Part shown: piece by piece, positions 233 through 17,162 of the stretch
Numbering within the stretch: the stretch's first letter is position 1
How the letters are laid out: the number at the start of each line of letters is the position of its first letter
Source of the DNA: Hyaloraphidium curvatum SAG 235-1
Lineage: Eukaryota > Fungi > Monoblepharomycota
NCBI GenBank assembly: GCA_025558095.1
Contig: JAIVFI010000027.1
Location: 434,001-498,000 of the forward strand
Direction of reading: 5' to 3'
DNA: 64,000 bases
The notes under the pieces: generated by a model
Databases searched by the model: none
Told to the model about the DNA's origin: nothing
The model's input: the letters and a program-made list of their open reading frames with translations, nothing else
Position numbers and translations under genes: made by a program

Positions 233-1647
233 TTAGAACCCCGCGCTGCGCATGGACGACCGCGTCGCCGTCATGATCTTTTCCAGGAACTCGGCCTTGT
301 CGTCCGAATCCAGCGAGAGCACGTCGAACCTGCACGAGGGAAAGTGCCGCCGGAAGATGTTGTCGCGGACCTCCTTCTCGAACATCTCGGTGCACGGGTG
401 GCACTGTGTGTGGGGCGTGTTGCGGCCTGCGGTGAGGCGTCCCGGTGCCCCGGCCAGCGCCCGGCTGCCACCCACCCGCAGGAAATAAACGTCGATCTGC
501 TTGTTGACGATCTGGCGCACCACACCCTCCCAATCCTCGGGCCTGCGCCCGTTGGGATCCGCCTTGTCCGCGAACCGGTCCGTGTACTTCCCCCCGTGGA
601 ACCTCCTCCCGTGCGGCGGCGCGTCCGCGATGACCAGCATCACCCTGGCCCTGGCCTGCCAATCCAGCCCCGGCACCCTGCACAGCCCCCCCAGCATGTC
701 CTCCGCGACGTCGTCCCCGCCGGACGCCCTGACGGAGAGGATGCGCTCGCGCAGGTACTCGGGCGCCATGAACTCGACCACCTCGTACGAGGACTGGTCG
801 GCGTCCTTGGGCTCGAAGTCGCGGTAGCCCACGAAGGCGGTGCGGAGCTGCGTGTCGGGGTAGAGCGCGCGGATGCGGTCGAGGATCTCGGTGACGGTCT
901 CCTTGACCCTGTCAACTTGGGGGTGGCAGGGGATCAGCACGGGAGGTAGGGGCGGGTGTGGGGGGGACGCACTCCAGTGCTGCATGGAGCCGGTGCAGTC
1001 GATCACGAAGCAGATGTCGACGCTCTGCACGCGCTTGCGGGCCTGCTCGATGCCGGACATGTTGCCGCGGACTGCCCGGAGCAAATCGTTGGCGCGGTTG
1101 CTTTTCCTGGCGGTCAGCACGGGCGAGCGGGGGCGGGAAAAAGAGCCCACTTGATCTCTGCGGGCTTCTCGGGCATGGCGTACGCGGGGGCGGCCGGATG
1201 GACGTTGCCGTAGGCGGCTCCGGCGGGGAAGGCCGGCACGGCGACGTCGCGGTACTGCGGGGCGGGCTGGTATGCCGCGGCCGGGGCCGGGTTGAACGAC
1301 GGCGGGAGGGGGGCAGCGGGAGCGTAGGCGGCCGGCGACGGCACGGGTGCGGGCTGGGGTGCCGGGCGGGCGTAGGCGTCGGGCGGGGGGACCGCGGTGT
1401 TTGCGGGGTAGCTCGTCGGGTAGGCCGCGGTGTACTCGTACGACGGCGGCGGTGAGATGGGCGGCTGTGGGTCGGCAGCGGGGCTGCGTCCGCGGGGCAC
1501 GTCCATCGTGGGGAAGGCGAGCGTGGCGGCCGAGTCGGGCATCGCGGGCGGCGTCGCGGCGATGTCGCCCGTCGCCGATCGCTGTGCGGCGCGCGCCTTG
1601 AGCGCGGCCAGCTTGGCGGCGAGGGCGTCGGACGGCTGCCGCTCCAT
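233..1647 (-). CDS. vWA-domain protein (VwkA-type vWA) with Pro/Ala/Tyr-rich N-terminus, 3 introns
   Basis: MIDAS-type motif VDICFVIDCTGSM, then AFVGYRD, GGDDVAED, LIADAPPHG. ATG at 1647 (MERQPSD...). GT-AG introns at about 1104-1151, 916-972 and 405-476. Confidence 0.85.
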
Positions 1648-1742
1648 CGCGGGAGGGGGTTGCGTTGAGAGGGGTGTCGCAGAGCGGGTGCCTGGTGGCG
1701 GCTGGAGCGCGTGATGACTGCGACGCCCCCGTTGCGGCCTTG

Positions 1743-3687
1743 ATGGCCAGCTGTGCGTTCTGCGCGGGCGGGCGGTCGGCCGCGCGGTACCTGGAGGATC
1801 GGCGCGCGGCGCTGGGCGCGGCGGGGCGCGCGGTGGCCGCGCCGGGCGGGCGGGAGGCCGACGCCGACGGCCCCACGCTGCTGCCCTTCGGGAACGCGGA
1901 CGACCGCGGCGCGTTCGCGGCGGCGCTCTCTCAGCTGCTGCCGGCGGGGGCGGCTGGGGCGGGCCCGCCCGACGCGGGGTCCGCCGTCGACGCGGCCCTG
2001 CGCGCCGTCCACGCCGTGCGCGACTGGCTGCCCGCCGGCGACGCCGCCGCGGTCGGCCTGCGCCTCCGACTGTGGGCCGCCGCGGAGTTCTACCCCGTCT
2101 ACGACGTGCCCGACGTGGCAAGCACCTTCCACACGCCGCTGTGGGCAAAGGACGTGGCAGACGACGCATTCGTGGCCCGCTGCCGCCGCGCCCGCGTGTG
2201 GGACGAGCGCACCTACGCCCGCGTCGCCGCCGCGTTCCCGCACGCCGCACCGGATCCCGCGGAGGAGCTGCGCCGCGAGGCTTCGACGGCCGCGGCCGAG
2301 GCCAAGGGCCGCGCAGTGCCCCGCGGCCATCCGCTGCGCACGGCCCTGGATGCCGTCGCGAGCCTGCCGCCCGCGGACCGCGTCGCATCGTGCCTGGTCG
2401 GCAGGCTGGTCTCTCTCTTGCAAGGTGCGTTGCCTGGTGCCATTGCTTCTGTTGGGCCACGGTGCCCCCGCCATCACATGATGCACAAGCTCATATTGAT
2501 CCCTGCCTTCGCCCCTGAAACTTGCAGAGTCGCGGATGCCGTCGCTCGAGGAGCAGCAGCGCGAGGCACACGCCGATGCCCGCACGCTCAGCAATGACAA
2601 GGCACCGGCCCAGAACGGCTTTGCCCAGCGCGGCCTGCCCGCCGAGGCCGCGCAGAGGCTCGCCTCGGTCTGCTGCGCCGTCACCCGCGCAATCGCCGCC
2701 TGCATCGCGCGCAACCGGGCCGCCCCCGCCGCCCTGTACGACGGGCTGGGCACCGCGGCCACGCTGCTGCGCACCTTCCCCTCGTACCCGCTCTGTGCCG
2801 GCTTCGTCGCCGCCCTCGCCGACCCCGACTTTGTCTCTGCCCTGGCCGCCTCGGCATGCGACGAATCGGCCCCCGCACCGCATGCCCTCGCGGCGCTCGA
2901 CCTCCTGGCCAAGCTCGTCCCGGACCTGTGCAAGCTCGACGGGATCACACTCCCCGACTTTTCCACCGTCCGCTCCGCCACCGAGCGCGCCGTCCGCGCC
3001 GCCCTCCTCCCCCGCGCCTGCGCCCTCGCCTCCCGCGCCGCCTCCCTCGGCCCCGGCGCAGCCCGCACGGCCGCCGCGGACCTCGCTGCCGTCCTCACGG
3101 CGATCGGCGCAGCCGACGTCGCCTGGGACGCCGCCGAATCCCTCCGCTCCTCCCCCCTCCTCCCCCCCTCGGACGCCGCCCTGGCCGCCCGCCCCCTCGA
3201 AGGCCGCGACGCCTCCCCCGCGCTCCTTGCCCCCCGAGCCTCCCGCATCGGCCGCGCCGGCGCACCCTGCGCCTGCGCATCCGCCGCCCGCGACCCCCGC
3301 CGATCGGCCGTCTGCCACGCGTGCGCGGATCCCCGCCCCCCGATCGGACCCAAGGGCGGCCCGCGCCGCGCGCTGGGGATGCTCGTCGCCCCCGGCCCGC
3401 CCCGCTCCTGGCGCGCCGTCCACGATCCCGCCGAAGCCTCCCGCCTCTGGCTCGCGGAGCTCTCGGCCTCCGTCCCCGGCGACGACCCCGCGATCGAGCG
3501 CGCGTGGCGGGACTGCATGCGCCGCCTGGCCGAGGACGACGCGTTCAGGGCCGCGCCGGGGGTGCCGCGGGCCGTGAGGGAGGCGGCGGAGGGCAAGGGG
3601 GGGCAGGGGGACGCGGTGGTGGAGGAGGAGACCGCGGTGGCGATCGGGAGGCTGATCGGGAACGTGGAGATCGCGGAGGGGGCGTAG
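1743..3687 (+). CDS. Hypothetical Ala/Leu-rich helical protein, 2 exons
   Basis: Strong GC3 codon bias in frames 1743-2423 and about 2529-3687, joined by a GTGCGT...TTGCAG intron. No family recognised. Confidence 0.6.
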
Positions 3688-3866
3688 CGGGAGGCGGCTT
3701 GTTATCCGCGCGGACGGACCGTACAAGCACCACAACCAACACACACGGTTCCTCTAGGAGTGCGCATCGCGTTTCCCTCGAAGTGGATTGTGCGCGCTGA
3801 AGAGTTAAATTGTGGATTGCTGCGTGATAGGCGGACGGTGAAAAGTTGTGTTCCGCGGGAAGACTG

Positions 3867-3956
3867 GCTGGCCACCATGATGTTTTGGTTCACTAATCCA
3901 GTGAAGATGAGGAATTCTCCCATAAAGTTAGCGGTTCCAGGGAAAGCGACGTTAGC
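3867..3956 (-). other. nad4: NUMT: about 90-bp fragment of mitochondrial nad4
   Basis: Minus strand reads ANVAFPGTANFMGEFLIFTGLVNQNIMVAS, matching the ND4 motif ANxxxPGTxxFxGEF. A/T-ending codons (gct, cct, gga, tta) contrast with the surrounding nuclear genes. No start, stop or flanking ND4 sequence. Confidence 0.8.
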
Positions 3957-4449
3957 CGTGGGCTGTGACTGCCTAGTAGGCACTTCGCATGGTGCGAGTG
4001 CAAGTCGTGCCGATCCCCCCGCACGTGGGACGACGGGCAGCCGGCCTCGCCGCCGCCGCTGGATGCCATCAGGCAGAAGGGCGAGGTGCACGCTCGTACC
4101 GTACCGCAGTCGTCGAAGCCACCACGCGCCAGCCTTGACACCGCGCCGCAGAACCGAAAAAAGCTCACCTGAGGAGGCGGGTTCCCCGCAGGAGGGCCAA
4201 AACCGTTAGTAGGCCCGCCGAAGGGCCGTTGCCGAGAGGGATCATGAGGAGGAAGGCGGCGGCGCGGTGAGTAAAGTGCTTGAGGCGGGGCTGGCGCGAG
4301 GCGGCGGCGACGACGGCGGCAGGTAGAGTGGATGGATCGAGGGAGCGAGCGTCGCCACTGACGTCATTCAGGCTTGCTGTGCGCTTCTATGGAAGGGCGG
4401 GTGCTTCCACGGAACGGCCGACTGCCCGCACACCCTCTCCCGCCCCGCG

Positions 4450-5785
4450 ATGCCACCGGCCAAGGACATTGCCGTCGCGGAGCACACCTTCACGGGACCT
4501 CCGCGCGATGGACACGGCGGGCACACGACCTACTACCTCGCCTCCGGCCCCGAAAGGGGCACCCCCGTTATCATGGTCCACGGCTGGCCCGAGAGGGCCG
4601 TCTCGTGGCGGCACGTCATGCCCGTCCTCGCCGGGCTGGGATTCCGCTGCTACGCGCCCGACATGCGCGGGTACGGGAGGAGCTCGGTGTACGCGGGGCA
4701 GGAAGACTACCGCATGGAACTGGTCGTGAAGGACCTGCTGGAGCTTGCGGACCACGTCGGAGCGAGGAAGGCCGTTTGGAGTGGGTCTGTTTATTGTCTC
4801 GGCGCGCGACCAAAGGTTCACATCGGCCATCGAGCAGTCGGTCACGATTTTGGGTCGCCTGCGGTTGGTGCCCTCGTCCAGCACCACCCCGAGAGAGTCC
4901 ATGGAGCTGTTTTCTTGTGTGTGCCCTACTATGCCAAAGGTCGGGTGCCTTCACCCGCTCTTGGCCTACTTCGATATCTTTCTGACTTTGGAACAGGATT
5001 CATTCCCCAGAACTTCCTGCCTTTTGTGGACCGCAGCATGTATCCGGAGAACAAGTTCCCGTGGGGCCAATGGGACTACATCAAGTTCTACCAGATTGAT
5101 TCCGGCTCCAGCGAGCGGCTTTTCGACAAGGACGTGGAGCGGACCTTCAAGATTCTTTTCCGAGCCGGCGACCCGACGGCAAAGGGCAAACGCTCGGGGA
5201 CAGCTACCATCTGCAACGACGGAGGATGGTTTGGCGGCGCATCTGAGGTGCCAAACGTCCCGATTGACAAGAGGGTAATCACCGAGGATGATCTGAAGGT
5301 CTACGTGGACGGCATGCGCAAGAACGGCTTCTTCGGGGCCAACAGTTGGTACGTTTGCTCGGCCGTAATCCAACCCTTATATTCATCTGCCTCACCGCGC
5401 ATCGGCCGGTAGGTACAGGAACTTTGACCACTGCGGGGAGTACGCAGCAAAGGCGCCCAACAACGGTACCCTCGAGTTCCCCGTGATGTTCATCCATGCC
5501 CGCTACGATTGGGCCTGCGAAGCGATCGAGAGCCACTTGGCCGATCCCATGCGCGAGAGTTGCAAGGATCTCACAGAGTTCGTCGTGGATGCGGGGCACT
5601 GGTGGGCTCCGCTCCATGCCGAGCGGGCCACGACGCGCGAGGCTGATCGCCCGCTGCTTGCTTGCAGGGTGGCCCAGGAGAAGCCGGCGCAGACGGCGGC
5701 TGCGATTGCGCAGTGGCTCGCGAGGAAGCTACCCACGGTGTGGAACAGGGACGGCCTGGAGGAAATCACAAGGAGTAAGCTGTAG
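4450..5785 (+). CDS. Epoxide hydrolase (alpha/beta hydrolase), 4 introns
   Basis: HGWPE oxyanion motif, APDMRGYG, spliced W-I-GHDFG nucleophile-Asp motif, lid Tyr (WDY...FY), and AGHW...QEKP catalytic His. Confidence 0.9.
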
Positions 5786-7516: not shown

Positions 7517-8217
7517 GCCCGGGTTCAGCGCATGGCGCTGTCCCAATTCGAGGGCTCAGAGGGTTCCATTGTGATCGCCGACTCCGTGCGATCGATCAGA
7601 GGTGACAGCTTCAGCAGTCTTCCCTACAGAACAACGCCATAGATTCCGAAAACGATCCAGCGTCCACCGCGGGCGCGAGATGTGAGGTTGCCGCATGCAA
7701 GCGGGGGGTCAGCGCCCCTGCTGATGCGACTGCACGCACTTCCCAGGCAGAGTCCGCCGGCCAAACACCTACGGGAGCTTCTACGGGTTACTTTGAGCCG
7801 TGTGCGGCCGTCGGACCCGTCTTTGGATGTGCATGACGCCGCCAGAATCATTGGCTTCGGGACTGCGTTCCTAGGGACGTTGAGGACGCTCGGGGACTTT
7901 TGGCTGGCGGACCATTTCCGGCGTGCAACGGCCGTCCCGGAGGCAATGAGGCATCGCGGGGCCATGGAACCGCTTCAGACAAACTATGAGTTGCCATAGG
8001 AAGCGCGGAATGGCCAGGAGATAGCCGAGCGGCGAGTTGACGATGCCACCAGGTGTCAGATACGGGAGCCACATCGCCGGTCGTTCCGTTCTAGCTTCAT
8101 CCATTCTGACCATGGATATCGGCTTTTCTGACGCTACAGGCTATCTCTGGCCCGCCGGAGAGCGCGAAACCAATCCGTGACCTCCGTCCGACCCCTAGCA
8201 GGCTGGAAGCTCCGTCG

Positions 8218-8340
8218 CCATCCCTCACCTACAAGGATGCTCCGGTTCAGTGCAGGGCTCCAGCTGCCGGCCAATTGGAGCACCGCACAGCACAAGCAGC
8301 GCATCGCCGACGTGCTCGAGGTCATGGGCCTCGGCTACTG
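8218..8340 (+). pseudogene. ABCG transporter NBD fragment, 5' part (interrupted by the LTR element)
   Basis: PSLTYK/MLRFSAGLQLP...RIADVLEVMGLGYC. It continues in frame as CAD... at 16810 once the element and one TSD are removed (ggc tac tgc gcc gac). Confidence 0.85.
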
Positions 8341-8804
8341 TGTGGAGGTCCGGGCCATCTTTCTTACATATTTTTCGTACTTTGTTGGGGAAATAGTCGT
8401 TTGTCGTAACCCGCAGAGGACCTGATCCCGATCTGATCCCGATCTGATCCCGGCGAGATCCCGGAAAGATCCCGGTCTGATCCCGATCTAATCCCGAGCG
8501 CGGGTATAAAAGGCCCATCGAATGTACTGCCAAAGTGTGTGTGTGCGCGACCACTACAGTTCGTCAGTGTTTTCATTCGTCCTCGCCGTGCGGAATTCCT
8601 CCCTCGCCGAGGTCCGAGTCCGTCAAGTCCGACCCTTCTGAGACGTCCCTCGGGAGACAAGTCTCCCTCAAGCGAATCTCTATCGAAGCTAAGTCAAACC
8701 CCGGCTGCTACTAACTCTACATCGGGCCTTTCGAGACGTGTGAGATTGAACCGTTTGTGCGGCGGGTTAAAGCGCTAGGCCCGGCTTTGACCCGGTCCGT
8801 CACA
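8341..8804 (+). repeat. 5' LTR (464 bp)
   Basis: TGTGGAGG...GTCACA, a direct repeat of 16342-16805. I found 3 substitutions by eye (about 99.4% identical). TATAAAA at 8505-8511. Confidence 0.98.
8423..8498 (+). repeat. About 7 tandem 11-bp units (TGATCCCGATC-like) in U3, just upstream of the TATA box
   Basis: tgatcccgatc tgatcccgatc tgatcccggcg agatcccgga aagatcccggtc tgatcccgatc taatcccgag. Also present in the 3' LTR at about 16424-16499. Confidence 0.9.
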
Positions 8805-9021: not shown

Positions 9022-10551
9022 ATGGAGGGAGCCCAAGCCGCGCCCGAAGCTAACCAGCCGCAGCAAATCCAGCAGGGGGAAGTCCCGCAGGGTGACCCCC
9101 CGCTCGTCGGACCCGCGGACCCGAATCCCGCTCCTGGCCAGCCGGCAATCCAGGCCGCTCAGGCTTTCATCCAGGAAATAGGTCAGGCCGCCAACGAAGT
9201 CGCACAGATGGCTTTGCAGGTAGCGGCCCAGCAGGCCCAGCAGCAGCAGCCTCAGGCGCCTGCCGGTCCGGGCATGCTGCCGCCTCAGCAGTTCGTCGAA
9301 GCCGTCCGCGCTATCGTTGGCGTGCCCCACGAAGAAGCTGTTCTCCCGGCGGATCGCCAGGGATCGGCTAGGCTGCCCGCTCAGCTCCTTCCGGCCCAGA
9401 TCCAGCCCTTCGATCAGGAAAGGCAGGACCCGGAGGACTTCTTCCGCGACCTCACTACCGTGCTCACCGCTTTCGGCGCCATCAACAACTTGGTCAGGGT
9501 CTTCCCGGTCTTCCTTGGTCCGCTCCCGCGGGCCATGTGGCAGAATATGATGACCCATCACACGGCCGAGCATCGTCCGCCCGACTACCCAGCAGCAAGC
9601 AACTATCCCCCGCAGAATCAAGCTGACGTGCTCACGTGGCTTCGCTACAACTTCGAGCCACGTGACGCTCCGGTCCACTACCGCCGGCACTTCTACACGA
9701 TCTCGATGAACGAGGACGAAACCCTCGACGCCTTCTTGGCGCGCGTGTCGCTCGCCGAGGCACGCTTCCTCTCGCATGCCGGTGACCAAGCTCCCATTAG
9801 GGAGGTGCAGGATTCTGTCTTCGGGCAGAACCTGTTGTTCGGGTTGCGTCCGGATCTCCGGGGCAAGGCTCTCGAGCTCCTCGGAGAATCGCCGATCAAC
9901 CGTTCTACGGTCACCAAAGTCATCGAGAAGATGAAGTCCGTCCTGCAGGCTTCCAAGCCTACGGTCTCGCACGACATCCGCTTCCTGGGTCAGCACTCAA
10001 TCGCCGAGATCCCGCAGCTGGTCGGTCAGAAATCGAGCAGCTCGTCAAAGGCCACCGACAAGGTCATCACGACCGAGGCGCTCATGGTAACGACCCAGGC
10101 CCTCGCCAAGCTTCTGGAACCGAAGGCTAAGCAGATTGAAGGCAAATCGCCTGACAAAGATGGGTTCCGTCCTCCGCCTCGCCGTTTCACCCCGTATGTT
10201 CCGCCCCGCAGGTTCCCTCCGGCTCCGACCCCTTCGACGGAGCTCGCCGAAATCAAGGAGCTCATCACTCGGATGGCACCCGGGCCCACGCAGAACGGCC
10301 TATGGCCCGATCCGCCGAGGCCCAGCGGCCCCATCCGGCGTGGTCCTCCCGAGCAGGATCGCCCGCAGCAAGATCGGCGTCCCTTTGCCTCCGGCTACCG
10401 CGATCTGAAGCGCCAGGTGCCTCGTCACTGCCACCTCTGTGGCATGGACGGGCACGTGCAGGACGATTGCTGGGAGCTAGAGAAGAATGCGAATCGGCGA
10501 CCGATCGGCTGGCGCTCGCGCCTCGGCACCTCCAACGGTTCAAAAAACTAG
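9022..10551 (+). CDS. gag: Gag (509 aa) with Q/P-rich N-terminus and CCHC zinc knuckle
   Basis: Follows the PBS. Major-homology-region-like MNEDETLDAFLARV and knuckle CHLCGMDGHVQDDC. Confidence 0.92.
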   Translation: MEGAQAAPEANQPQQIQQGEVPQGDPPLVGPADPNPAPGQPAIQAAQAFIQEIGQAANEVAQMALQVAAQQAQQQQPQAPAGPGMLPPQQFVEAVRAIVGVPHEEAVLPADRQGSARLPAQLLPAQIQPFDQERQDPEDFFRDLTTVLTAFGAINNLVRVFPVFLGPLPRAMWQNMMTHHTAEHRPPDYPAASNYPPQNQADVLTWLRYNFEPRDAPVHYRRHFYTISMNEDETLDAFLARVSLAEARFLSHAGDQAPIREVQDSVFGQNLLFGLRPDLRGKALELLGESPINRSTVTKVIEKMKSVLQASKPTVSHDIRFLGQHSIAEIPQLVGQKSSSSSKATDKVITTEALMVTTQALAKLLEPKAKQIEGKSPDKDGFRPPPRRFTPYVPPRRFPPAPTPSTELAEIKELITRMAPGPTQNGLWPDPPRPSGPIRRGPPEQDRPQQDRRPFASGYRDLKRQVPRHCHLCGMDGHVQDDCWELEKNANRRPIGWRSRLGTSNGSKN

Positions 10552-10590
10552 CTTTGCCCTCAACAGCCAATGGCTATAGGGGGGCGGAGT
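10542..10590 (+). promoter_or_regulatory. -1 programmed ribosomal frameshift signal (A_AAA_AAC plus 3' stem-loop)
   Basis: TCA AAA AAC TAG ends gag, and the protease ORF is in the -1 frame. Downstream CTTTGCCCT pairs with GGGGCGGAG around an AGCC-AAT-GGCT hairpin. Confidence 0.8.
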
Positions 10591-11549
10591 TTAAGTCCTT
10601 AGAAGCCAAAGGAGATGATGCCTACGCGCAGCTCACCAAGGCCTTCGCGGCACTCCCTGGAATCGTCACCTCCATCGAGGATGCGATGGGTAGCCCGTCC
10701 CAGCCGACGCGGATCGTCCGCGCATGCCGGAACAGCGCACCCGCTGGTCCTGCCTCCCGGGAAGAGCTCCTGACAGAAATGCCGGAGTTTCCACCGACGG
10801 GTACTCCCGACTCGCAAGAACAAGAAGAAATCGACGCCGCCTTTGATGAACGAGCCGGATGGTCCGAACCGGGGCCGATTGACGGCCCCAATGGATTGGC
10901 GGAGGTGAACGCGGTGCCAGGCCCTTTGGAGGTAGAAATACTTTCGGAAGTCTATCCGCAACCGCCTCCCCGTCCAGACGGCGCGCCTCGTTCTCGTCCT
11001 CGTCCTGCCAATCGTCCACTTCAACCAGTGGAAGCTTGGACTTGGGCTTCGCACCGCCAACTTATTTATCAAGCGGCACGCATTTCTGCCATGGTTAACA
11101 ACATTCCAACCATGAATGCGATCGTCGATTCCGGCGCCTCAATCGTCGCCATCAAGACCGCCTTCTTTGTCCGCCTTAATCCATCACCACCAATCCGTCC
11201 GTGGACGCTTGGAACCATCAATACGGCAGCCTCTGGAGGAAGTATATCGGTCAAGGGAGTGGTGGAGCTCGACATTTTTGTCGGCAATCAGCACCTCCTC
11301 ACCGATGCTGTCCTTATGGATGGCATCGAGGATGAACTGATCCTCGGCACGCCTTGGCTGCACGCGCTGAAGGTACAGATGGCCTGGGATATTCCGGCCC
11401 TGTCCTTCAGAGATGATCCGTCCCAGCTGAAGGTCCCAATCCGCACTGTCTCCCGACCGCTATTCTCCTCACATCTGGTTTCTCCCCTGACGGTCACCAC
11501 CGGCTGCGCAATCCCGCCTGGAGAGGACCGCTGGTCACCGTCGCATTGA
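10548..11549 (+). CDS. pol: Pol N-terminal part: aspartic protease
   Basis: AIVDSGAS catalytic motif and LILGTPWL motif, in the -1 frame relative to gag. Confidence 0.9.
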   Translation, partial: LALPSTANGYRGAEFKSLEAKGDDAYAQLTKAFAALPGIVTSIEDAMGSPSQPTRIVRACRNSAPAGPASREELLTEMPEFPPTGTPDSQEQEEIDAAFDERAGWSEPGPIDGPNGLAEVNAVPGPLEVEILSEVYPQPPPRPDGAPRSRPRPANRPLQPVEAWTWASHRQLIYQAARISAMVNNIPTMNAIVDSGASIVAIKTAFFVRLNPSPPIRPWTLGTINTAASGGSISVKGVVELDIFVGNQHLLTDAVLMDGIEDELILGTPWLHALKVQMAWDIPALSFRDDPSQLKVPIRTVSRPLFSSHLVSPLTVTTGCAIPPGEDRWSPSH

Positions 11550-14500
11550 TGGAATCAACGCCACTGGCAACAGTGGTCGGGATGGCTTTGCCTGGCGTGA
11601 TTGAAACTCCGAATGGACCTCCTTACGACCAGCTCTTGATAGTCCCGTACTTCCCACCGGATGTGAGCAACAGCATGTTTGCTTTCATTCGAAACTACGG
11701 CACTACCGAGGTGGAGCTCTTCGAAGGTTTCCATGCCGGACGTTTCCGCGCCAGGATCCCGCACCAACTTGCGCCCCCGCCACCGCTGCCAGAGCTCAAA
11801 ACGCTCGAGGTCAGGGAATCGGCGCTGGCGCAGGAAGAACTGCCCCACGAGGAACCAACTGTAATCGTGGAGCCAACCGAGGAGGATGCGGCCGGGTTGT
11901 TCTCTGTCCCTCCTGCTTCCTCACTTGGACCGGCCAAACCGCCGAATGCAGTTGCGCCCCCGGTCGAAGCACTCGAGCTGAAACTGGACCAGACCATCCT
12001 CAATGAGGAGCAAAAAGTCCGGTTTCATGCCCTGTGCGATCGCTACCGTGATGTGTTTGCCCCGTGGATTGGGAAGCTCCGCAATCACCGCTTCAAAATC
12101 GACACTGGCGATACCAAGCCCATCCATCAAATTCCCTACCGGACGCCCTTTCGGCTTCGTGCCGAGATGGATGCCGTGATTGACGATCTGCTTGCTCAGG
12201 GCGTTGTTGTCCCCTCGCGCAGCCCTTACGCCGCCCCGGCCCTGATGGTCCCTAAAGGCCACGGATCTGGGGAATGGCGGCTCGTCATTGACTACCGCAA
12301 GCTGAATGCACACACCAAGCGGGACGTCTATCCGACGAAAAACCCGACCGACACCCTCGCGCTATTGCGCACGGCGAAGGTCTGGAGCATCTGCGACATC
12401 CGCTCGGGCTTTTGGCATGTGGAGGTCGCTGACGAGGATAAGGAGAAGACAGCGTTCACGACCCATCGGGGGCTATACCAATGGGAGCGCATGGCTATGG
12501 GATTTACCAATTTGCCGGCTACTTTTGCTCGAATGATGGATGAACTCCTCGCGGGCTTGCAGTGGTGGTGTCTTGTCGTCTTTATCGATGACATCATTAT
12601 CTTCTCGCAGTCCGTCGAAGAGCACTTCCTCCATCTCGAGCTTCTCTTTCAACGGCTTAAGGAGGCCGGCATGACTCTCAAGCTGGCCAAATGCAAGTTT
12701 TTCAGGAATGAAGTTAAGTATCTCGGGCACCTCGTCACGAGCAACGGCCTTCGGGTCGACCCCGAGAAAACTCGCGCAATTGATAATTTCCCGCGCCCTA
12801 CGTCGAAGAAGGAAGTCCAGTCCTTCCTCGGCCTTGCTAACTACTACAGGCCTTTTATCGCCGGGTACGCGAATATTGCGCACCCGCTCACCCGCTTGAC
12901 GCAAGACGGCGCCTCGGTCACCCGCGACTGGGACGATTCCTGCGAGACCGCCTTCAAAACTTTGAAGGGACGGCTTACGACCGCCCCCGTCCTCCGCAGG
13001 CCCGATATGACTAAACCGTTCGTGCTCATTACCGACGCGAGCGACGTGGGCCTCGGCGCCGTCCTGAGTCAGCGCGATGAAACCGGCCGCGACTACGCCG
13101 TGCGCTACGGCAGCCGTGCCCTCCTCCCGAACGAACGCAAATGGGATACGCGCGAGCGCGAAGCCCTGGCTGTCGTCTGGGCGTGCGAGCACTTCCGCCC
13201 GTATCTGATTGGCGCTGAGTTCGAGGTCGTAACCGATCAAAGCGCCCTCAAGTGGTTGCTGGAGACTTCCAAGCCCGGCAGGCTGCAGCGATGGATACTG
13301 CGACTGTCGGAGTTCAAGTTCAAGGTTATCCACCGTGCAGGTAAGGAGAATTCTAACGCTGATTTTCTTTCGCGTCAGATCCCTCCGATGGACCCGGCCG
13401 GCGAAGAGCCGCCTGAGGACCCGGAGGAGATTTTCGACATCCCACAGTTTCGTCCCCTCCCCTGCGACCCACCCTTGTCTTCTAAGGGGGGGAGGGGGCC
13501 CGGACCCTTGTCCGGGAGTGATCCCGGAGGGACCCCGATTTTCCTTAGGATCCCCGCCACCGGCACGTCCGGAAGAGCCACAAACGGATCCATCGGCGAC
13601 CAGGAAAGTTCCGGAGCCGCAAGTATCAAAGGAAACGAGGCCGAAGGGGCTGGAATGGAGATCGAGGCCGCGGAGGAGGCCCCGGTGAGTGATCCCGAAC
13701 GACCCCCTGCGTCCTCGAATCCCCAGATCCTCCTTCCCATTCCATCGATTAATGCATCGGCCGATCCGGACGACGTTCCGGAGCGTGACAAGGCCTACGT
13801 GCACCCGATGCTCTTTAACGCGCTGCCCGAAATCCCGGCCATTAGCGCGATCGACCTGGCTGACGTCATGACCCGAGAATCCCTGCGCAAAGTCCAGGAG
13901 GCTGACGTCGAGACCAGTGCATTAATCCGCTTCGTGCGAGATAATCAGCTCCCTGAGCGGAGCAAGAAACATCCAGAACACGCCCGCTTGAGGAAGTTCT
14001 GCGAGAAATATGGTAATCAGTATTTTCTGGCCAAGGATGGCGTGCTGTGCCGGCGCGATGAAATCACGACCGGAACCCGCCGCATCCCTGTGATCCAGCT
14101 CGTCATTCCGCATGAACTGCGGGAGGCGTACCTTTACCGTGCACACGGAGACCCGCTTAGCGGGCACGTGGGCCGACATAAGGCCTATAATAATCTCCGA
14201 CGGCGAGTCTACTGGGTAGGCATGGCCCACGACGTCCGCAAATGGACGCGCGGATGCCACACGTGCCAATCCAGAAAGCTCCCGTCCGTCGCAAATCAGG
14301 GTCTACTTAAATCCGTCCCCCTCACAGGTCCCAACGAGGACATCTATATCGATTATATTGGCGAGATTAAGCCGGCGACGCCCCGGGGCAACAAGTACCT
14401 CCTCGTGGTTTATGATCCGTTCACGAAATGGGTGGCGGCATATCCAACGAAGGATTGCACCGGGCCGACAACAGCCGAGCTCCTCTATTCTCGCTGGATT

Positions 14501-15577
14501 CTCGAGCATGGTGTGCCAAGACGAATTCACCACGACAACGCACGCAATCTCGACAGCAGCTATCTACAGCACCTACTCAAGCTTCTCAACATTAACCGCG
14601 GCCTCGTTACCGTCGGCCATCCTCAGTCGTCATTGGCGGAGCGCCCAAATCGGTGGATCATGGACGCCCTGAGCGCCGCTGTCGATCAGAGTCAGAGGAC
14701 CTGGGACAGGGACATCACGGGTGTCATCTTCGCCTTCCGGACCTCCATCCACGCTACCACTGGGGAAACTCCCTTCTTCCTCATGCACGGCCGCGACGCC
14801 CGGCTACCTCTCGATCTTCTGTACGATGAAACGGAGATCGAAGAGCCGATAAAACTGCGACCGAGAGATGAGGCAAAGAAGAAGTCGGAGGCCGAACGCC
14901 GCTACACCGACGTGGTGGAAATGCTCTCGCAGCTACGCACGGCGTACGACCTCGTGGCAAGGAAAATGGCGGAGGCGGCCGAGACTCGCAATGCGAGGGA
15001 AAACAGGGCTCGCCTCCCAGTCACCTTCCGCCCGGGCGACATCGTCATGGTCTGGAGTCCCGAGAGAGCCCAAAAGGGCGAATCAGGCAAGTTCGTTTCG
15101 CGGCACATTGGTCCTTACCGCGTCATCCAGCAGGGAAATACGGAGCTGACTTGGCAGCTCCAGCATCTCGATCAAGACACCCACAAAATCACCGTCCACG
15201 TCGATCGAATGCAGCGGTTCAAGCCCTGGGAGGCTGCGGCCTTCAACGCCCGCTCATGGAATGCCAGAGCACCTGAGCTCGCGCCCCAGGACGCCCTCGA
15301 TCTGACGAACCCCATGGATGAGCTCGAGGAGCAGATCGAAATCGAGAATGAGATCGCCCGAGAACGAGAGGACATAGTCGAGGCTATCCTTTCGCACGAG
15401 GGGCAGGGGGACAGGCTCAAGTTCGTCGTGAAATGGTTCGGGCATGCCCGCACGACGAAGGAACCCCTGGATGCGCTGGCGACCGCGATGGACAAGGTCC
15501 ACGGGTACGCCGCCCGCGTCGGTCTCAAACTGCCGTCGTCCGCTCCCGGCCGCCGGCGTAATTATCGTAAACGGTAA
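11531..15577 (+). CDS. pol: Pol: RT, RNase H, integrase and chromodomain; separated from the protease by a 1-nt frameshift at about 11530
   Basis: RT: LVIDYRKLN, DIRSGFWHV, FIDDIIIFS. RH: TDASDVGLGAVL, EREALAVVW. IN: HGDPLSGH...CHTC, IDYIG, HDNA, LAER, GPY. C-terminal IVEAILSH...KFVVKWFGH...KEP is chromodomain-like. Confidence 0.95.
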   Translation: MVTVALMESTPLATVVGMALPGVIETPNGPPYDQLLIVPYFPPDVSNSMFAFIRNYGTTEVELFEGFHAGRFRARIPHQLAPPPPLPELKTLEVRESALAQEELPHEEPTVIVEPTEEDAAGLFSVPPASSLGPAKPPNAVAPPVEALELKLDQTILNEEQKVRFHALCDRYRDVFAPWIGKLRNHRFKIDTGDTKPIHQIPYRTPFRLRAEMDAVIDDLLAQGVVVPSRSPYAAPALMVPKGHGSGEWRLVIDYRKLNAHTKRDVYPTKNPTDTLALLRTAKVWSICDIRSGFWHVEVADEDKEKTAFTTHRGLYQWERMAMGFTNLPATFARMMDELLAGLQWWCLVVFIDDIIIFSQSVEEHFLHLELLFQRLKEAGMTLKLAKCKFFRNEVKYLGHLVTSNGLRVDPEKTRAIDNFPRPTSKKEVQSFLGLANYYRPFIAGYANIAHPLTRLTQDGASVTRDWDDSCETAFKTLKGRLTTAPVLRRPDMTKPFVLITDASDVGLGAVLSQRDETGRDYAVRYGSRALLPNERKWDTREREALAVVWACEHFRPYLIGAEFEVVTDQSALKWLLETSKPGRLQRWILRLSEFKFKVIHRAGKENSNADFLSRQIPPMDPAGEEPPEDPEEIFDIPQFRPLPCDPPLSSKGGRGPGPLSGSDPGGTPIFLRIPATGTSGRATNGSIGDQESSGAASIKGNEAEGAGMEIEAAEEAPVSDPERPPASSNPQILLPIPSINASADPDDVPERDKAYVHPMLFNALPEIPAISAIDLADVMTRESLRKVQEADVETSALIRFVRDNQLPERSKKHPEHARLRKFCEKYGNQYFLAKDGVLCRRDEITTGTRRIPVIQLVIPHELREAYLYRAHGDPLSGHVGRHKAYNNLRRRVYWVGMAHDVRKWTRGCHTCQSRKLPSVANQGLLKSVPLTGPNEDIYIDYIGEIKPATPRGNKYLLVVYDPFTKWVAAYPTKDCTGPTTAELLYSRWILEHGVPRRIHHDNARNLDSSYLQHLLKLLNINRGLVTVGHPQSSLAERPNRWIMDALSAAVDQSQRTWDRDITGVIFAFRTSIHATTGETPFFLMHGRDARLPLDLLYDETEIEEPIKLRPRDEAKKKSEAERRYTDVVEMLSQLRTAYDLVARKMAEAAETRNARENRARLPVTFRPGDIVMVWSPERAQKGESGKFVSRHIGPYRVIQQGNTELTWQLQHLDQDTHKITVHVDRMQRFKPWEAAAFNARSWNARAPELAPQDALDLTNPMDELEEQIEIENEIAREREDIVEAILSHEGQGDRLKFVVKWFGHARTTKEPLDALATAMDKVHGYAARVGLKLPSSAPGRRRNYRKR

Positions 15578-15652
15578 GCACTTTCGATTTGACGTTAACT
15601 ATCCACAGACAGCACAACTTCGACTCAACAACAACGACTCGCTCAACAATAA

Positions 15653-16009
15653 CTATCCATAAACGATAACAACCGACCAGAGCGGATCAAAGATGAAAGA
15701 CGTGCTTTCAAACGGCACTTCCTCCGCGTGCTGGTGGCGCACGTGCTTGATAAAGTTGCTCTTCGTTGACGCAAACGTCTTCGAATGGATCACACCTTTC
15801 CCCCGGCATGACCCCAGCATGCACTGCACAGCACAATACTCGTCATCAGCCCGCTTGCCAACCGCGTAGGTCGCGATGGTCCCGTCGGACCAAAGGACCC
15901 ACCACCGCAGCTCTTTATCCCGGATCCTTTCGTCTTGCCGCCGCACCTTCCAGTGCAGCAGCGCGGCGGGGACATCCGGCTGCAAGGGCGGAAAGTTGCG
16001 TCGCAACAT
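15653..16009 (-). CDS. Antisense extra ORF of the retroelement (118 aa) with a BED-type zinc finger
   Basis: YCAVQCMLGSCRGKG...STKSNFIKHVRHQH fits the BED finger pattern Cx(2-4)C...SNFxxHxxxxH. ATG start, and a GT-rich tract after the stop on the minus strand. Confidence 0.65.
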   Translation of the reverse strand: MLRRNFPPLQPDVPAALLHWKVRRQDERIRDKELRWWVLWSDGTIATYAVGKRADDEYCAVQCMLGSCRGKGVIHSKTFASTKSNFIKHVRHQHAEEVPFESTSFIFDPLWSVVIVYG

Positions 16010-16307
16010 GGAGCATATTCATCAGTTCGCCGAGCGCACGGTTGCCGAGTACAACACGATTCGCGGCGACCTCGCTTCCATCCAGACCCGCTACGCTGGG
16101 CTCGACTTCCTCGCCTGGGTGGCGGAGCAGCAGGCCGAGCAGGCCGCCGCGGCTCCCGAGTACAACTTCCCGACTCCTCCCTACAACTCCCCACAGCCTA
16201 ACGACCTTTTCAACGAGCTTTTCCCCGACGTCCCCGACATCCCGTCGCCCGCCTACTCGCCCGGGCCCTACATCGGGTACGATGACGGGGAAGTGGCGAT
16301 GGACTGA
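16008..16307 (+). CDS. Sense extra ORF of the retroelement (99 aa), acidic/Pro/Tyr-rich C-terminus
   Basis: MEHIHQFAERT...PAYSPGPYIGYDDGEVAMD*. Strong GC3 bias; ends 24 nt before the PPT. Confidence 0.5.
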   Translation: MEHIHQFAERTVAEYNTIRGDLASIQTRYAGLDFLAWVAEQQAEQAAAAPEYNFPTPPYNSPQPNDLFNELFPDVPDIPSPAYSPGPYIGYDDGEVAMD

Positions 16308-16330
16308 ACGCGCCGGGGCGGCGCTTCTCT

Positions 16331-16341
16331 GGGTGGGGGAG
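16331..16341 (+). promoter_or_regulatory. Polypurine tract
   Basis: GGGTGGGGGAG immediately before the 3' LTR. Confidence 0.85.
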
Positions 16342-16805
16342 TGTGGAGGTCCGGGCCATCTTTCTTACATATTTTTCGTACTTTGTTGGGGAAATAGTCG
16401 TTTGTCGTAACCCGCAGAGGACCTGATCCCGATCTGATCCCGATCTGATCCCGGCGAGATCCCGGAAAGATCCCGGTCTGATCCCGATCTAATCCCGAGC
16501 GCGGGCATAAAAGGCCCATCGAATGTACTGCCAAAGTGCGTGTGTGCGCGACCACTACAGTTCGTCAGTGTTTTCATTCGTCCTCGCCGTGCGGAATTCC
16601 TCCCTCGCCGAGGTCCGAGTCCGTCAAGTCCGACCCTTCTGAGACGTCCCTCGGGAGACAAGTCTCCCTCAAGCGAATCTCTATCGAAGCTAAGTCAAAC
16701 CCCGGCTGCTACTAACTCTACATCGGGCCTTTCGAGACGTGTGAGATTGAACCGTTTGTGCGGCGGGTTAAAGCGCTAGGCCCGGCTTTTACCCGGTCCG
16801 TCACA
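16342..16805 (+). repeat. 3' LTR (464 bp)
   Basis: Direct repeat of 8341-8804, followed by the TSD ACTG. Confidence 0.98.
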
Positions 16806-17162
16806 ACTGCGCCGACCGCCGCATCGGGATCCAGCTCGTCCGCGGTCTCTCGACCGGCGAGCACAAGCGCATGAACGTCGCCATGGAGCTGCTTCCCGTC
16901 GCCTCTGTGCTCTCCCTCGACGAGCCCACGACAGGCCTCGACTCCAACACCGGCCGCGAGATCATCGCCAACGTCGTCGAGGTCAAGCGCCTGCGCAAGC
17001 TGGCCTCCGTCGCCACGATCCACCAGCCTTCATACACCATCCTCTCGCCGTTGACTACCTCCTGCTACTCGCCAAGGGCAAGCTCTGCTACTTTGGCCGC
17101 GTCACACGACGCCATGCTTTACTTCGATTTCCTCGGCATTCCGATCATTGGCAACGCAGCCG
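16806..17162 (+). pseudogene. ABCG transporter NBD fragment, 3' part, frameshifted
   Basis: GLSTGEHKR (degenerate signature), LSLDEPTTGLDS (Walker B/D-loop), TIHQPS, then DYLLLLAKGKLCYFG and AMLYF in shifted frames. No transmembrane domain follows. Confidence 0.85.

Follow-up and report, generated by a model that had tools for sequence, protein, structure and literature searches.

A probable deletion remnant of a larger accessory module behind pol in a Ty3/Gypsy retrotransposon of the fungus Hyaloraphidium curvatum

Foamy viruses have a second, internal promoter that drives their accessory genes, and the DNA binder Tas acts on this promoter as well as on U3. HBZ of HTLV-1 is a bZIP protein of a vertebrate retrovirus. 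It arises from a spliced antisense transcript of the 3' part of the provirus, and is a nuclear regulator of the DNA-binding type (cited in PMC7264820). The accessory genes of LTR retrotransposons are poorly understood, and no function has been assigned to the antisense examples that we found, which are those of plants (PMC7264820, PMC11963269). The plant elements Retand, Grande and RIRE2 have antisense ORFs behind pol, with tandem arrays in the interval and a promoter of their own (PMC7264820, PMC11963269). The antisense ORF of Retand carries a TRP28 domain; in Grande, a separate promoter serves the antisense gene, the product of which is nuclear, and a DNA-binding role has been predicted (PMC7264820, PMC11963269). 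No fungal or BED-type antisense accessory gene of this kind was found in the literature that we searched.

The elements described here come from Hyaloraphidium curvatum, which belongs to the Monoblepharomycota and is indeed a fungus, as a preliminary description of this DNA had supposed. In this early-diverging fungus, a Gypsy family that has recently amplified, with at least 12 copies of about 99.9% mutual identity, contains an antisense gene that is spliced, ends in a putative zinc finger and lies beside a second promoter built from the repeat unit of U3. Like the plant Ty3/Gypsy elements of the Tat/Retand type (Retand with its TRP28 ORFs, maize Grande with gene23, rice RIRE2), the H. curvatum elements combine an antisense coding region with short tandem arrays in a long interval between pol and the 3' LTR. 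Unlike the plant elements, they reside in a monoblepharid fungus, and have a CCHH finger at the end of the antisense product, two spliceosomal introns confirmed in transcript contigs, and a divergent sense ORF (ORF3). Pfam gave no match to TRP28/Transposase_28 (PF04195) in any exon. The likeness to HBZ, and to similar antisense genes of deltaretroviruses, lies in the spliced antisense transcript, and a transcript contig that reaches the LTR edge makes a start in or near the 3' LTR possible; however, the protein would be a zinc-finger protein instead of a bZIP protein, and there is no sequence relationship. The likeness to the foamy-virus system is that each family has the same unit of about 11 bp in U3 and in the internal promoter. 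In contrast to that system, the internal promoter is located between divergent genes, the binding of the finger to the arrays is putative, and there is no homology to Tas.

The stretch of DNA that we analyzed, the window, is 64,000 nucleotides long and contains one complete, young Ty3/Gypsy LTR retrotransposon on the plus strand. The 5' LTR (8341-8804) and the 3' LTR (16342-16805) are bounded by TG..CA and are identical at 461 of 464 nt, leaving three differences. The target-site duplication ACTG is found at 8337-8340 before the 5' LTR and at 16806-16809 after the 3' LTR. The internal region comprises a gag ORF (9022-10551, 509 aa, with a CCHC knuckle near the end), a protease frame (10302-11549; Pfam Asp_protease_2, E 3.7e-06), a pol ORF (11546-15577; Pfam RVT_1, RT_RNaseH, Integrase_H2C2 and rve) and the polypurine tract GGGTGGGGGAG (16331-16341), which abuts the 3' LTR. 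The succession Asp_protease_2, RVT_1, RT_RNaseH, Integrase_H2C2, rve corresponds to the Ty3/Gypsy domain order gag - PR - RT - RNase H - IN. One of the three LTR differences, at LTR position 165 (window 8505 and 16506), affects the TATA box: the 5' LTR has GTATAAAAGG, and the 3' LTR has GCATAAAAGG.

In the window copy, the protease frame is offset from that of RT. Around 11520-11550, it ends with ..PPGEDRWSPSH and a stop codon, and pol goes on in another frame with ..VTVALMESTPLATVV. At the equivalent place in the recently amplified family introduced above (the sister family), a single ORF of 1681 aa reads through, whereas the window copy requires a frameshift; the offset is probably a disabling frameshift of this copy. 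The insertion has split a fragment of an ABC-transporter-like gene, parts of which flank the element at 8100-8340 and 16806-17100 of the window. With an E-value of 5e-4, which is below the Pfam cut-off, the flank on the downstream side resembles the end of ABC_tran, and it appears to be frameshifted too. The most fitting description of the window copy is that of a defective derivative that inserted recently. Its family is represented in the 31.9-Mb genome by this one full copy and by one partial copy on C2, and no intact copy that would show the undeleted accessory region is present in the genome.

Behind the pol stop at 15577, two ORFs with the peptides quoted in the preliminary description are present, a minus-strand ORF at 15653-16009 (118 aa) and a plus-strand ORF at 16008-16307 (99 aa). 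Their start codons overlap in the palindrome CATG at 16007-16010. These ORFs had been interpreted as complete, co-evolved head-to-head genes that share one CATG and encode a DNA binder and an activation peptide. Both frames are open and start with ATG, the plus ATG has a good context (AACATGG), and both the finger-like motif and the acidic tail can be confirmed in the sequence. However, the plus ORF is not a complete gene. The only other match to the region in the genome, at C2:663734-665317 on the minus strand, is 94% identical to the plus ORF in nucleotides and 95-99% in amino acids, and there the 99 residues form the end of an open frame of 360 aa, that of ORF3. Its start, at 16008, is an internal Met codon of this longer frame. 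The nucleotide homology between the window and C2 begins at 15997, eleven bases before the plus ATG, and upstream of this position the two loci are unrelated. The segment 15997-16307 on the plus strand is the C-terminal remnant of ORF3 and corresponds to residues 254-360 in C2.

The same boundary bears on the minus ORF. Because the homology to the longer ORF3 of C2 begins at 15997, the CATG sits in ORF3-derived sequence, and the minus ORF owes its ATG and first four codons to ORF3 codons read in reverse complement; the six codons that follow would be the leftover end of an intron, TTTCCGCCCTTGCAG. The context of the minus ATG is poor (CTCCATGT). By this comparison of sequences, the first ten codons of the 118-aa ORF do not appear to be original coding sequence, and the CATG overlap is most readily explained as a junction accident of a deletion rather than as a designed arrangement. 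Start codons that overlap neatly can be the product of a deletion, which becomes visible only when other copies are compared.

The C2 locus (L047, G000:C2:660000-669000) holds, at reverse-complement coordinates 3061-5268, a mini-element of the window family. Its parts are, in this order, the initial 137 nt of the LTR, the window-family 11-bp unit in an expanded array, a TATA box, ORF3, the polypurine tract and a full 3' LTR, and it has no gag, pol or antisense gene. The 360-aa frame of ORF3 is overlapped by a frame of 223 aa that starts at the promoter, which likely reflects a frameshift or an intron. About 2.3 kb upstream of the mini-element lies the end of an oppositely oriented sister-family element.

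The full accessory module is present in two related families. The pol sequences of the sister family and the window element are 71% identical. Sister-family elements are approximately 10.7 kb long, with 2.8 kb between pol and the LTR. In the representative locus L048, the pol stop is at 202, and is followed by an antisense finger ORF (273-578, minus strand), the end of which is about 70 nt from the pol stop. An antisense frame of 295 codons (579-1466, minus strand) has the same phase as the finger ORF, and a single TGA separates the two. Further downstream lie an 11-bp array (1389-1530), a TATA box at about 1553, the sense ORF3 of 421 aa (1627-2892, plus strand) and the polypurine tract, with the LTR starting at about 3037. 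A third family, C1 (locus L050), has its parts in the same order, with a finger ORF at 558-932 on the minus strand (tblastn E 2e-15, 43-45% identity to the sister family), an array with a period of about 11 bp at 1697-1791, and a sense ORF3 of 430 aa at 1854-3146 on the plus strand. As expected of LTR retrotransposons of the aORF-3R type, the antisense coding region is thus kept between pol and the 3' LTR across at least 12 sister copies and in C1, and the window has, in our interpretation, only its last exon. The start codons of the antisense and sense genes are 368 bp apart in the sister family and about 330 bp apart in C1, with the repeat array in between, and in the sister family also the TATA box.

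The interpretation of the two ORFs as a complete head-to-head pair is hard to reconcile with these relatives. The window keeps no promoter between the ORFs, as opposed to the array-containing spacer of 330-368 bp, the minus ATG with its poor context lies in ORF3-derived sequence, and in the relatives the finger ORF is exon 3 of a spliced gene. This model is largely refuted, and we give it a very small chance of being correct. What stands of the proposed regulatory pair is that, behind pol, the element group has a zinc-finger gene in antisense orientation together with a sense gene, the product of which has an acidic, Pro/Tyr-rich tail; what does not stand is its presence in the window, where the plus ORF is a fragment, the minus ORF is probably one as well, and no internal promoter is left between them.

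We therefore favor the reading that an internal deletion of about 2 kb collapsed a larger accessory module, of which the segment 15578-16330 is what remains, and consider this probable. In intact relatives, the module comprises a three-exon antisense gene with a CCHH (BED-like) finger in its last exon, a region of about 370 bp with an 11-bp array of the U3 unit and a TATA box, and a sense ORF3 of 421-430 aa, followed by the polypurine tract and the 3' LTR. In the window copy, the deletion would have brought approximately codon 254 of ORF3 next to the final 17 nt of antisense intron 2, with the junction at 15996/15997. Antisense exons 1 and 2, the internal promoter and the first three quarters of ORF3 would have been lost. 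By chance, the junction would have created in-frame ATGs on both strands, and hence the CATG. The remnant in the window is presumably no longer a working gene pair.

Deletions are also seen in the sister family. At G000:C11:503097-541448 (L013-L015, L026 and L028), sister-family copies follow one another head to tail at intervals of about 11,078 bp. They are without the pol end, the finger exon and most of exon 2, and have kept ORF3; therefore, deletions around the accessory module recur.

The antisense gene of the sister family is transcribed and spliced. Two introns were predicted from the sequence on the minus strand, one of 50 nt (GTAAGA..CAG) and one of 57 nt (GTGAAC..GCTGAT..CCAG), and introns of 54 nt and 51 nt were predicted at the equivalent places in C1. 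In both families, each predicted intron holds the in-frame stop or a frameshift, and removal of the introns from the sister gene gives one continuous three-exon frame of 29 + 165 + 98 codons. Contigs of sequencing run X1 contain both joints on L048. The joint 569 to 627 skips 57 nt (570-626), and the joint 1120 to 1171 skips 50 nt (at 1121/1122-1170/1171); both have CT..AC ends, corresponding to GT..AG on the minus strand, exactly as predicted. X1 is the only public run with sister-family sequence, its type is only guessed as RNA, and its contigs give neither strand nor transcript ends. Because all genomic copies contain the introns, the contigs must derive from RNA. This evidence applies to the sister family and not to the window copy. 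One contig of 1,974 nt (L048:1039-3062) extends from spliced exons 2 and 1 through the internal promoter and the complete ORF3 to just inside the 3' LTR. As with HBZ, the start of the antisense RNA may be located in the 3' LTR or close to it. The reported depth on L048 falls sharply after about 3216, ahead of the TATA box of the LTR.

We hypothesize that the window minus ORF is the remnant of the terminal exon of this antisense gene. The exon would span 15653-15979 on the minus strand, with 108 codons and a stop, and the pattern W..LRWW..C59-x3-C63-x4-C68..SNFIKH89-x4-H94. It would be preceded by the last 17 nt of the former intron 2 (15980-15996, minus strand), containing a pyrimidine tract and a CAG acceptor, with the branch point and everything upstream deleted. 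The antisense strand at 15994-15974 reads TTTCCGCCCTTGCAG followed directly by CCG GAT, which would place the acceptor in phase 0. The spacing from acceptor to first Trp is 10 residues in the window, 8 in the sister family and 10 in C1. The window ORF and its relatives have the pattern LRW..GT.A..Y..C..C..N-h-x-x-H..H..A.E.V in common; about 20 residues after the Cys pair, the window has S-N-F-I-K-H-x4-H-A-E-E-V, and the relatives have G-N-[LM]-N-x-H-x5-H-K-x-A-F-E-G-V. The motif C-x(2-4)-C-x(10-27)-N-[LFMI]-x-x-H-x(3-5)-H, which was defined after viewing the three ORFs, occurs only in the window minus ORF and in the sister and C1 antisense ORFs among approximately 960 open frames (615 frames of at least 60 aa in the window and 349 frames of at least 50 aa in five loci). 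The GC content by codon position of the minus ORF (0.57/0.43/0.72) is of the coding type and resembles that of pol (0.63/0.44/0.70). It is because acceptor, spacing, Cys/His pattern, motif rarity and coding GC all fit that we read 15653-15979 as a last exon.

Alternatively, the minus ORF could be a chance open frame in a GC-rich non-coding spacer, unrelated to the sister antisense gene, so that only the plus ORF would have a history as a gene. Its length would allow this: the window contains 302 stop-to-stop frames of at least 118 aa, and by length alone the minus ORF is no more than the chance expectation. Neither BLASTP (E 2.3) nor hhalign (probability 0.06%) detected significant similarity between the window ORF and the sister and C1 finger exons, and a custom HMM of the sister and C1 exons gave the window ORF 1.0 bit, no higher than random frames. 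No homologues were found among 5.8 billion or 1.84 billion proteins beyond repeat artefacts, and a word-index protein search returned no matches for the window ORF or for the alignment of the sister and C1 exons. Low AlphaFold confidence (pLDDT 37-45) is likewise consistent with a chance frame. Three HMMER matches of the window ORF to the 1.84 billion representatives, with E-values of 2e-6 to 9e-4, were rejected as artefacts, being summed weak matches to tandem-repeat proteins (cadherin-like and others).

A lack of detectable similarity is expected, however, at the distance of the window from the sister family, if the finger exon has evolved as fast here as between the sister family and C1. 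Between the sister family and C1, the pol C-terminus is 91% identical in amino acids with a dS of 0.54, whereas the finger exon is only 43% identical with a dS of 1.44, and ORF3 is 24-31% identical; the pol C-terminus of the window is 58% identical to that of the sister family. The dN/dS comparison that had been proposed for both ORFs could be made for the finger exon between the sister family and C1, where it gives about 0.5, a value that is weak on its own since dS is saturated (1.4). The motif common to both relatives and otherwise absent from the frames scanned, the same position, strand and acceptor-to-Trp spacing, the gene-like codon-position GC and the language-model result described below, a score reached by about 1 in 100 shuffled proteins, all speak against a chance frame, which we consider unlikely. 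At best, then, the window minus ORF would be the last exon of a three-exon gene, and we infer its homology to the finger exon from these features rather than from significant sequence similarity.

A different origin of the segment 15578-15996 would be the capture of a fragment of a host BED or C2H2 gene, which replaced the accessory region by recombination or template switching. In line with such a capture, the segment is unique in the genome and has no nucleotide-level similarity to the sister accessory regions. However, a six-frame search of the 31.9-Mb genome revealed no host paralogue of the minus ORF (best other match E 0.1) and no zf-BED gene from which a fragment could have been taken, and the orientation and register are exactly those of exon 3 of the relatives, including the intron acceptor. 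We regard capture as highly improbable, and retain the remnant exon as the preferred reading.

The finger itself had been assigned to the BED type. The zf-BED family (PF02892; found in hAT transposases, ZBED, BEAF and DREF) resembles the finger in the aromatic residues upstream of the Cys pair (W36 and W37 in the window) and in the helix [ST]-N-h-x-x-H-x4/5-H about 20 residues further on, with fitting His spacing in the window (H89-x4-H94) and in the sister family (H-x5-H). It differs in the Cys spacing, which is 2 in zf-BED and 3 or 4 here (C59-x3-C63-x4-C68 in the window, C-x4-C in the sister family). A profile search did not bear out the assignment. There was no Pfam zf-BED match (threshold 20.6 bits) in the minus ORF, its core, or the sister or C1 exons at E-values up to 1 or 10, and a six-frame search of the whole genome with zf-BED also gave no match. 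Pfam searches with both ORFs, the finger cores and the sister and C1 exons yielded only weak matches, to Ribosomal_S20p (E 0.07-0.14) and, for C1, to zf-C2H2_14 (E 0.05). No relevant sequence match to the finger was found in the PDB, and the AlphaFold2 models (pLDDT 37.1 for the 118-aa ORF and 45.2 for the 71-aa core) are too low in confidence for a fold search. All searches and folds took the exons of the antisense gene singly. In ESM-Atlas features, the window ORF scores 0.95 to BED-bearing clusters, with 199 of 256 features shared, and exon 3 of the sister family scores 0.92, with 170 shared, to one of the zf-BED-bearing clusters of the window ORF. As about 1 in 100 shuffled proteins reach the score of 0.95 to BED clusters, the neighborhood suggests a relationship to BED as a lead, not as proof. 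Judged by its residue pattern, the finger appears to be a CCHH finger of the C2H2 kind that is BED-like, and its membership in zf-BED proper is possible but somewhat doubtful. Nothing supports the chromo-like nature that had been suggested for the Trp-containing segment of the minus ORF.

The 11-bp repeats were found in U3 as previously described, at 16423-16498 in the 3' LTR and at 8422-8497 in the 5' LTR, both on the plus strand. The array in the 5' LTR consists of 6.9 copies of CTGATCCCGAT just upstream of the TATA box. The window family has the unit CTGATCCCGAT, the sister family a GACTCGCGATC-like unit and C1 the unit ACGGCGTCGCA, each of about 11 bp. Within each family, U3 and the internal promoter have the same repeat unit, and the units differ between families. 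The proposal that the repeats are targets of the finger is plausible in so far as the arrays are family-specific and occur in two promoters; the DNA binding itself is putative. The combination of a fast-diverging finger protein with family-specific arrays in two promoters suggests, by analogy, a self-encoded regulator. We speculate that, in a circuit of the Tas or HBZ type, the BED-like finger made from the spliced antisense mRNA could recognize the 11-bp arrays of its family in U3 and in the internal promoter, that finger and unit could co-evolve by family, and that deleted copies with a U3 array could be driven or repressed in trans. In this extended form the idea is more likely wrong than right by a wide measure. 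If true, it would mean that a retrotransposon, like complex retroviruses, encodes its own transcription factor, in a system that is small and testable.

The ORF3 proteins are helical or coiled-coil, with an acidic, Pro/Tyr-rich tail, and have only weak Pfam matches of the coiled-coil type. The C2 and sister ORF3 have only the architecture in common (BLASTP E 0.08), and no ORF3 homologue was found outside the H. curvatum genome; the sister-family ORF3 is identical to the NCBI entry hypothetical protein DFJ74DRAFT_747442 of Hyaloraphidium curvatum. PPxY motifs are of the kind bound by the WW domains of Nedd4/Rsp5. Canonical motifs, PPVY and PPTY (in MPPVYTP and LPPTYTP), are present in the ORF3 tails of the sister family (L048:2740-2790) and C1 (L050), and in their place the window and C2 tails have TPPY and SPAY.
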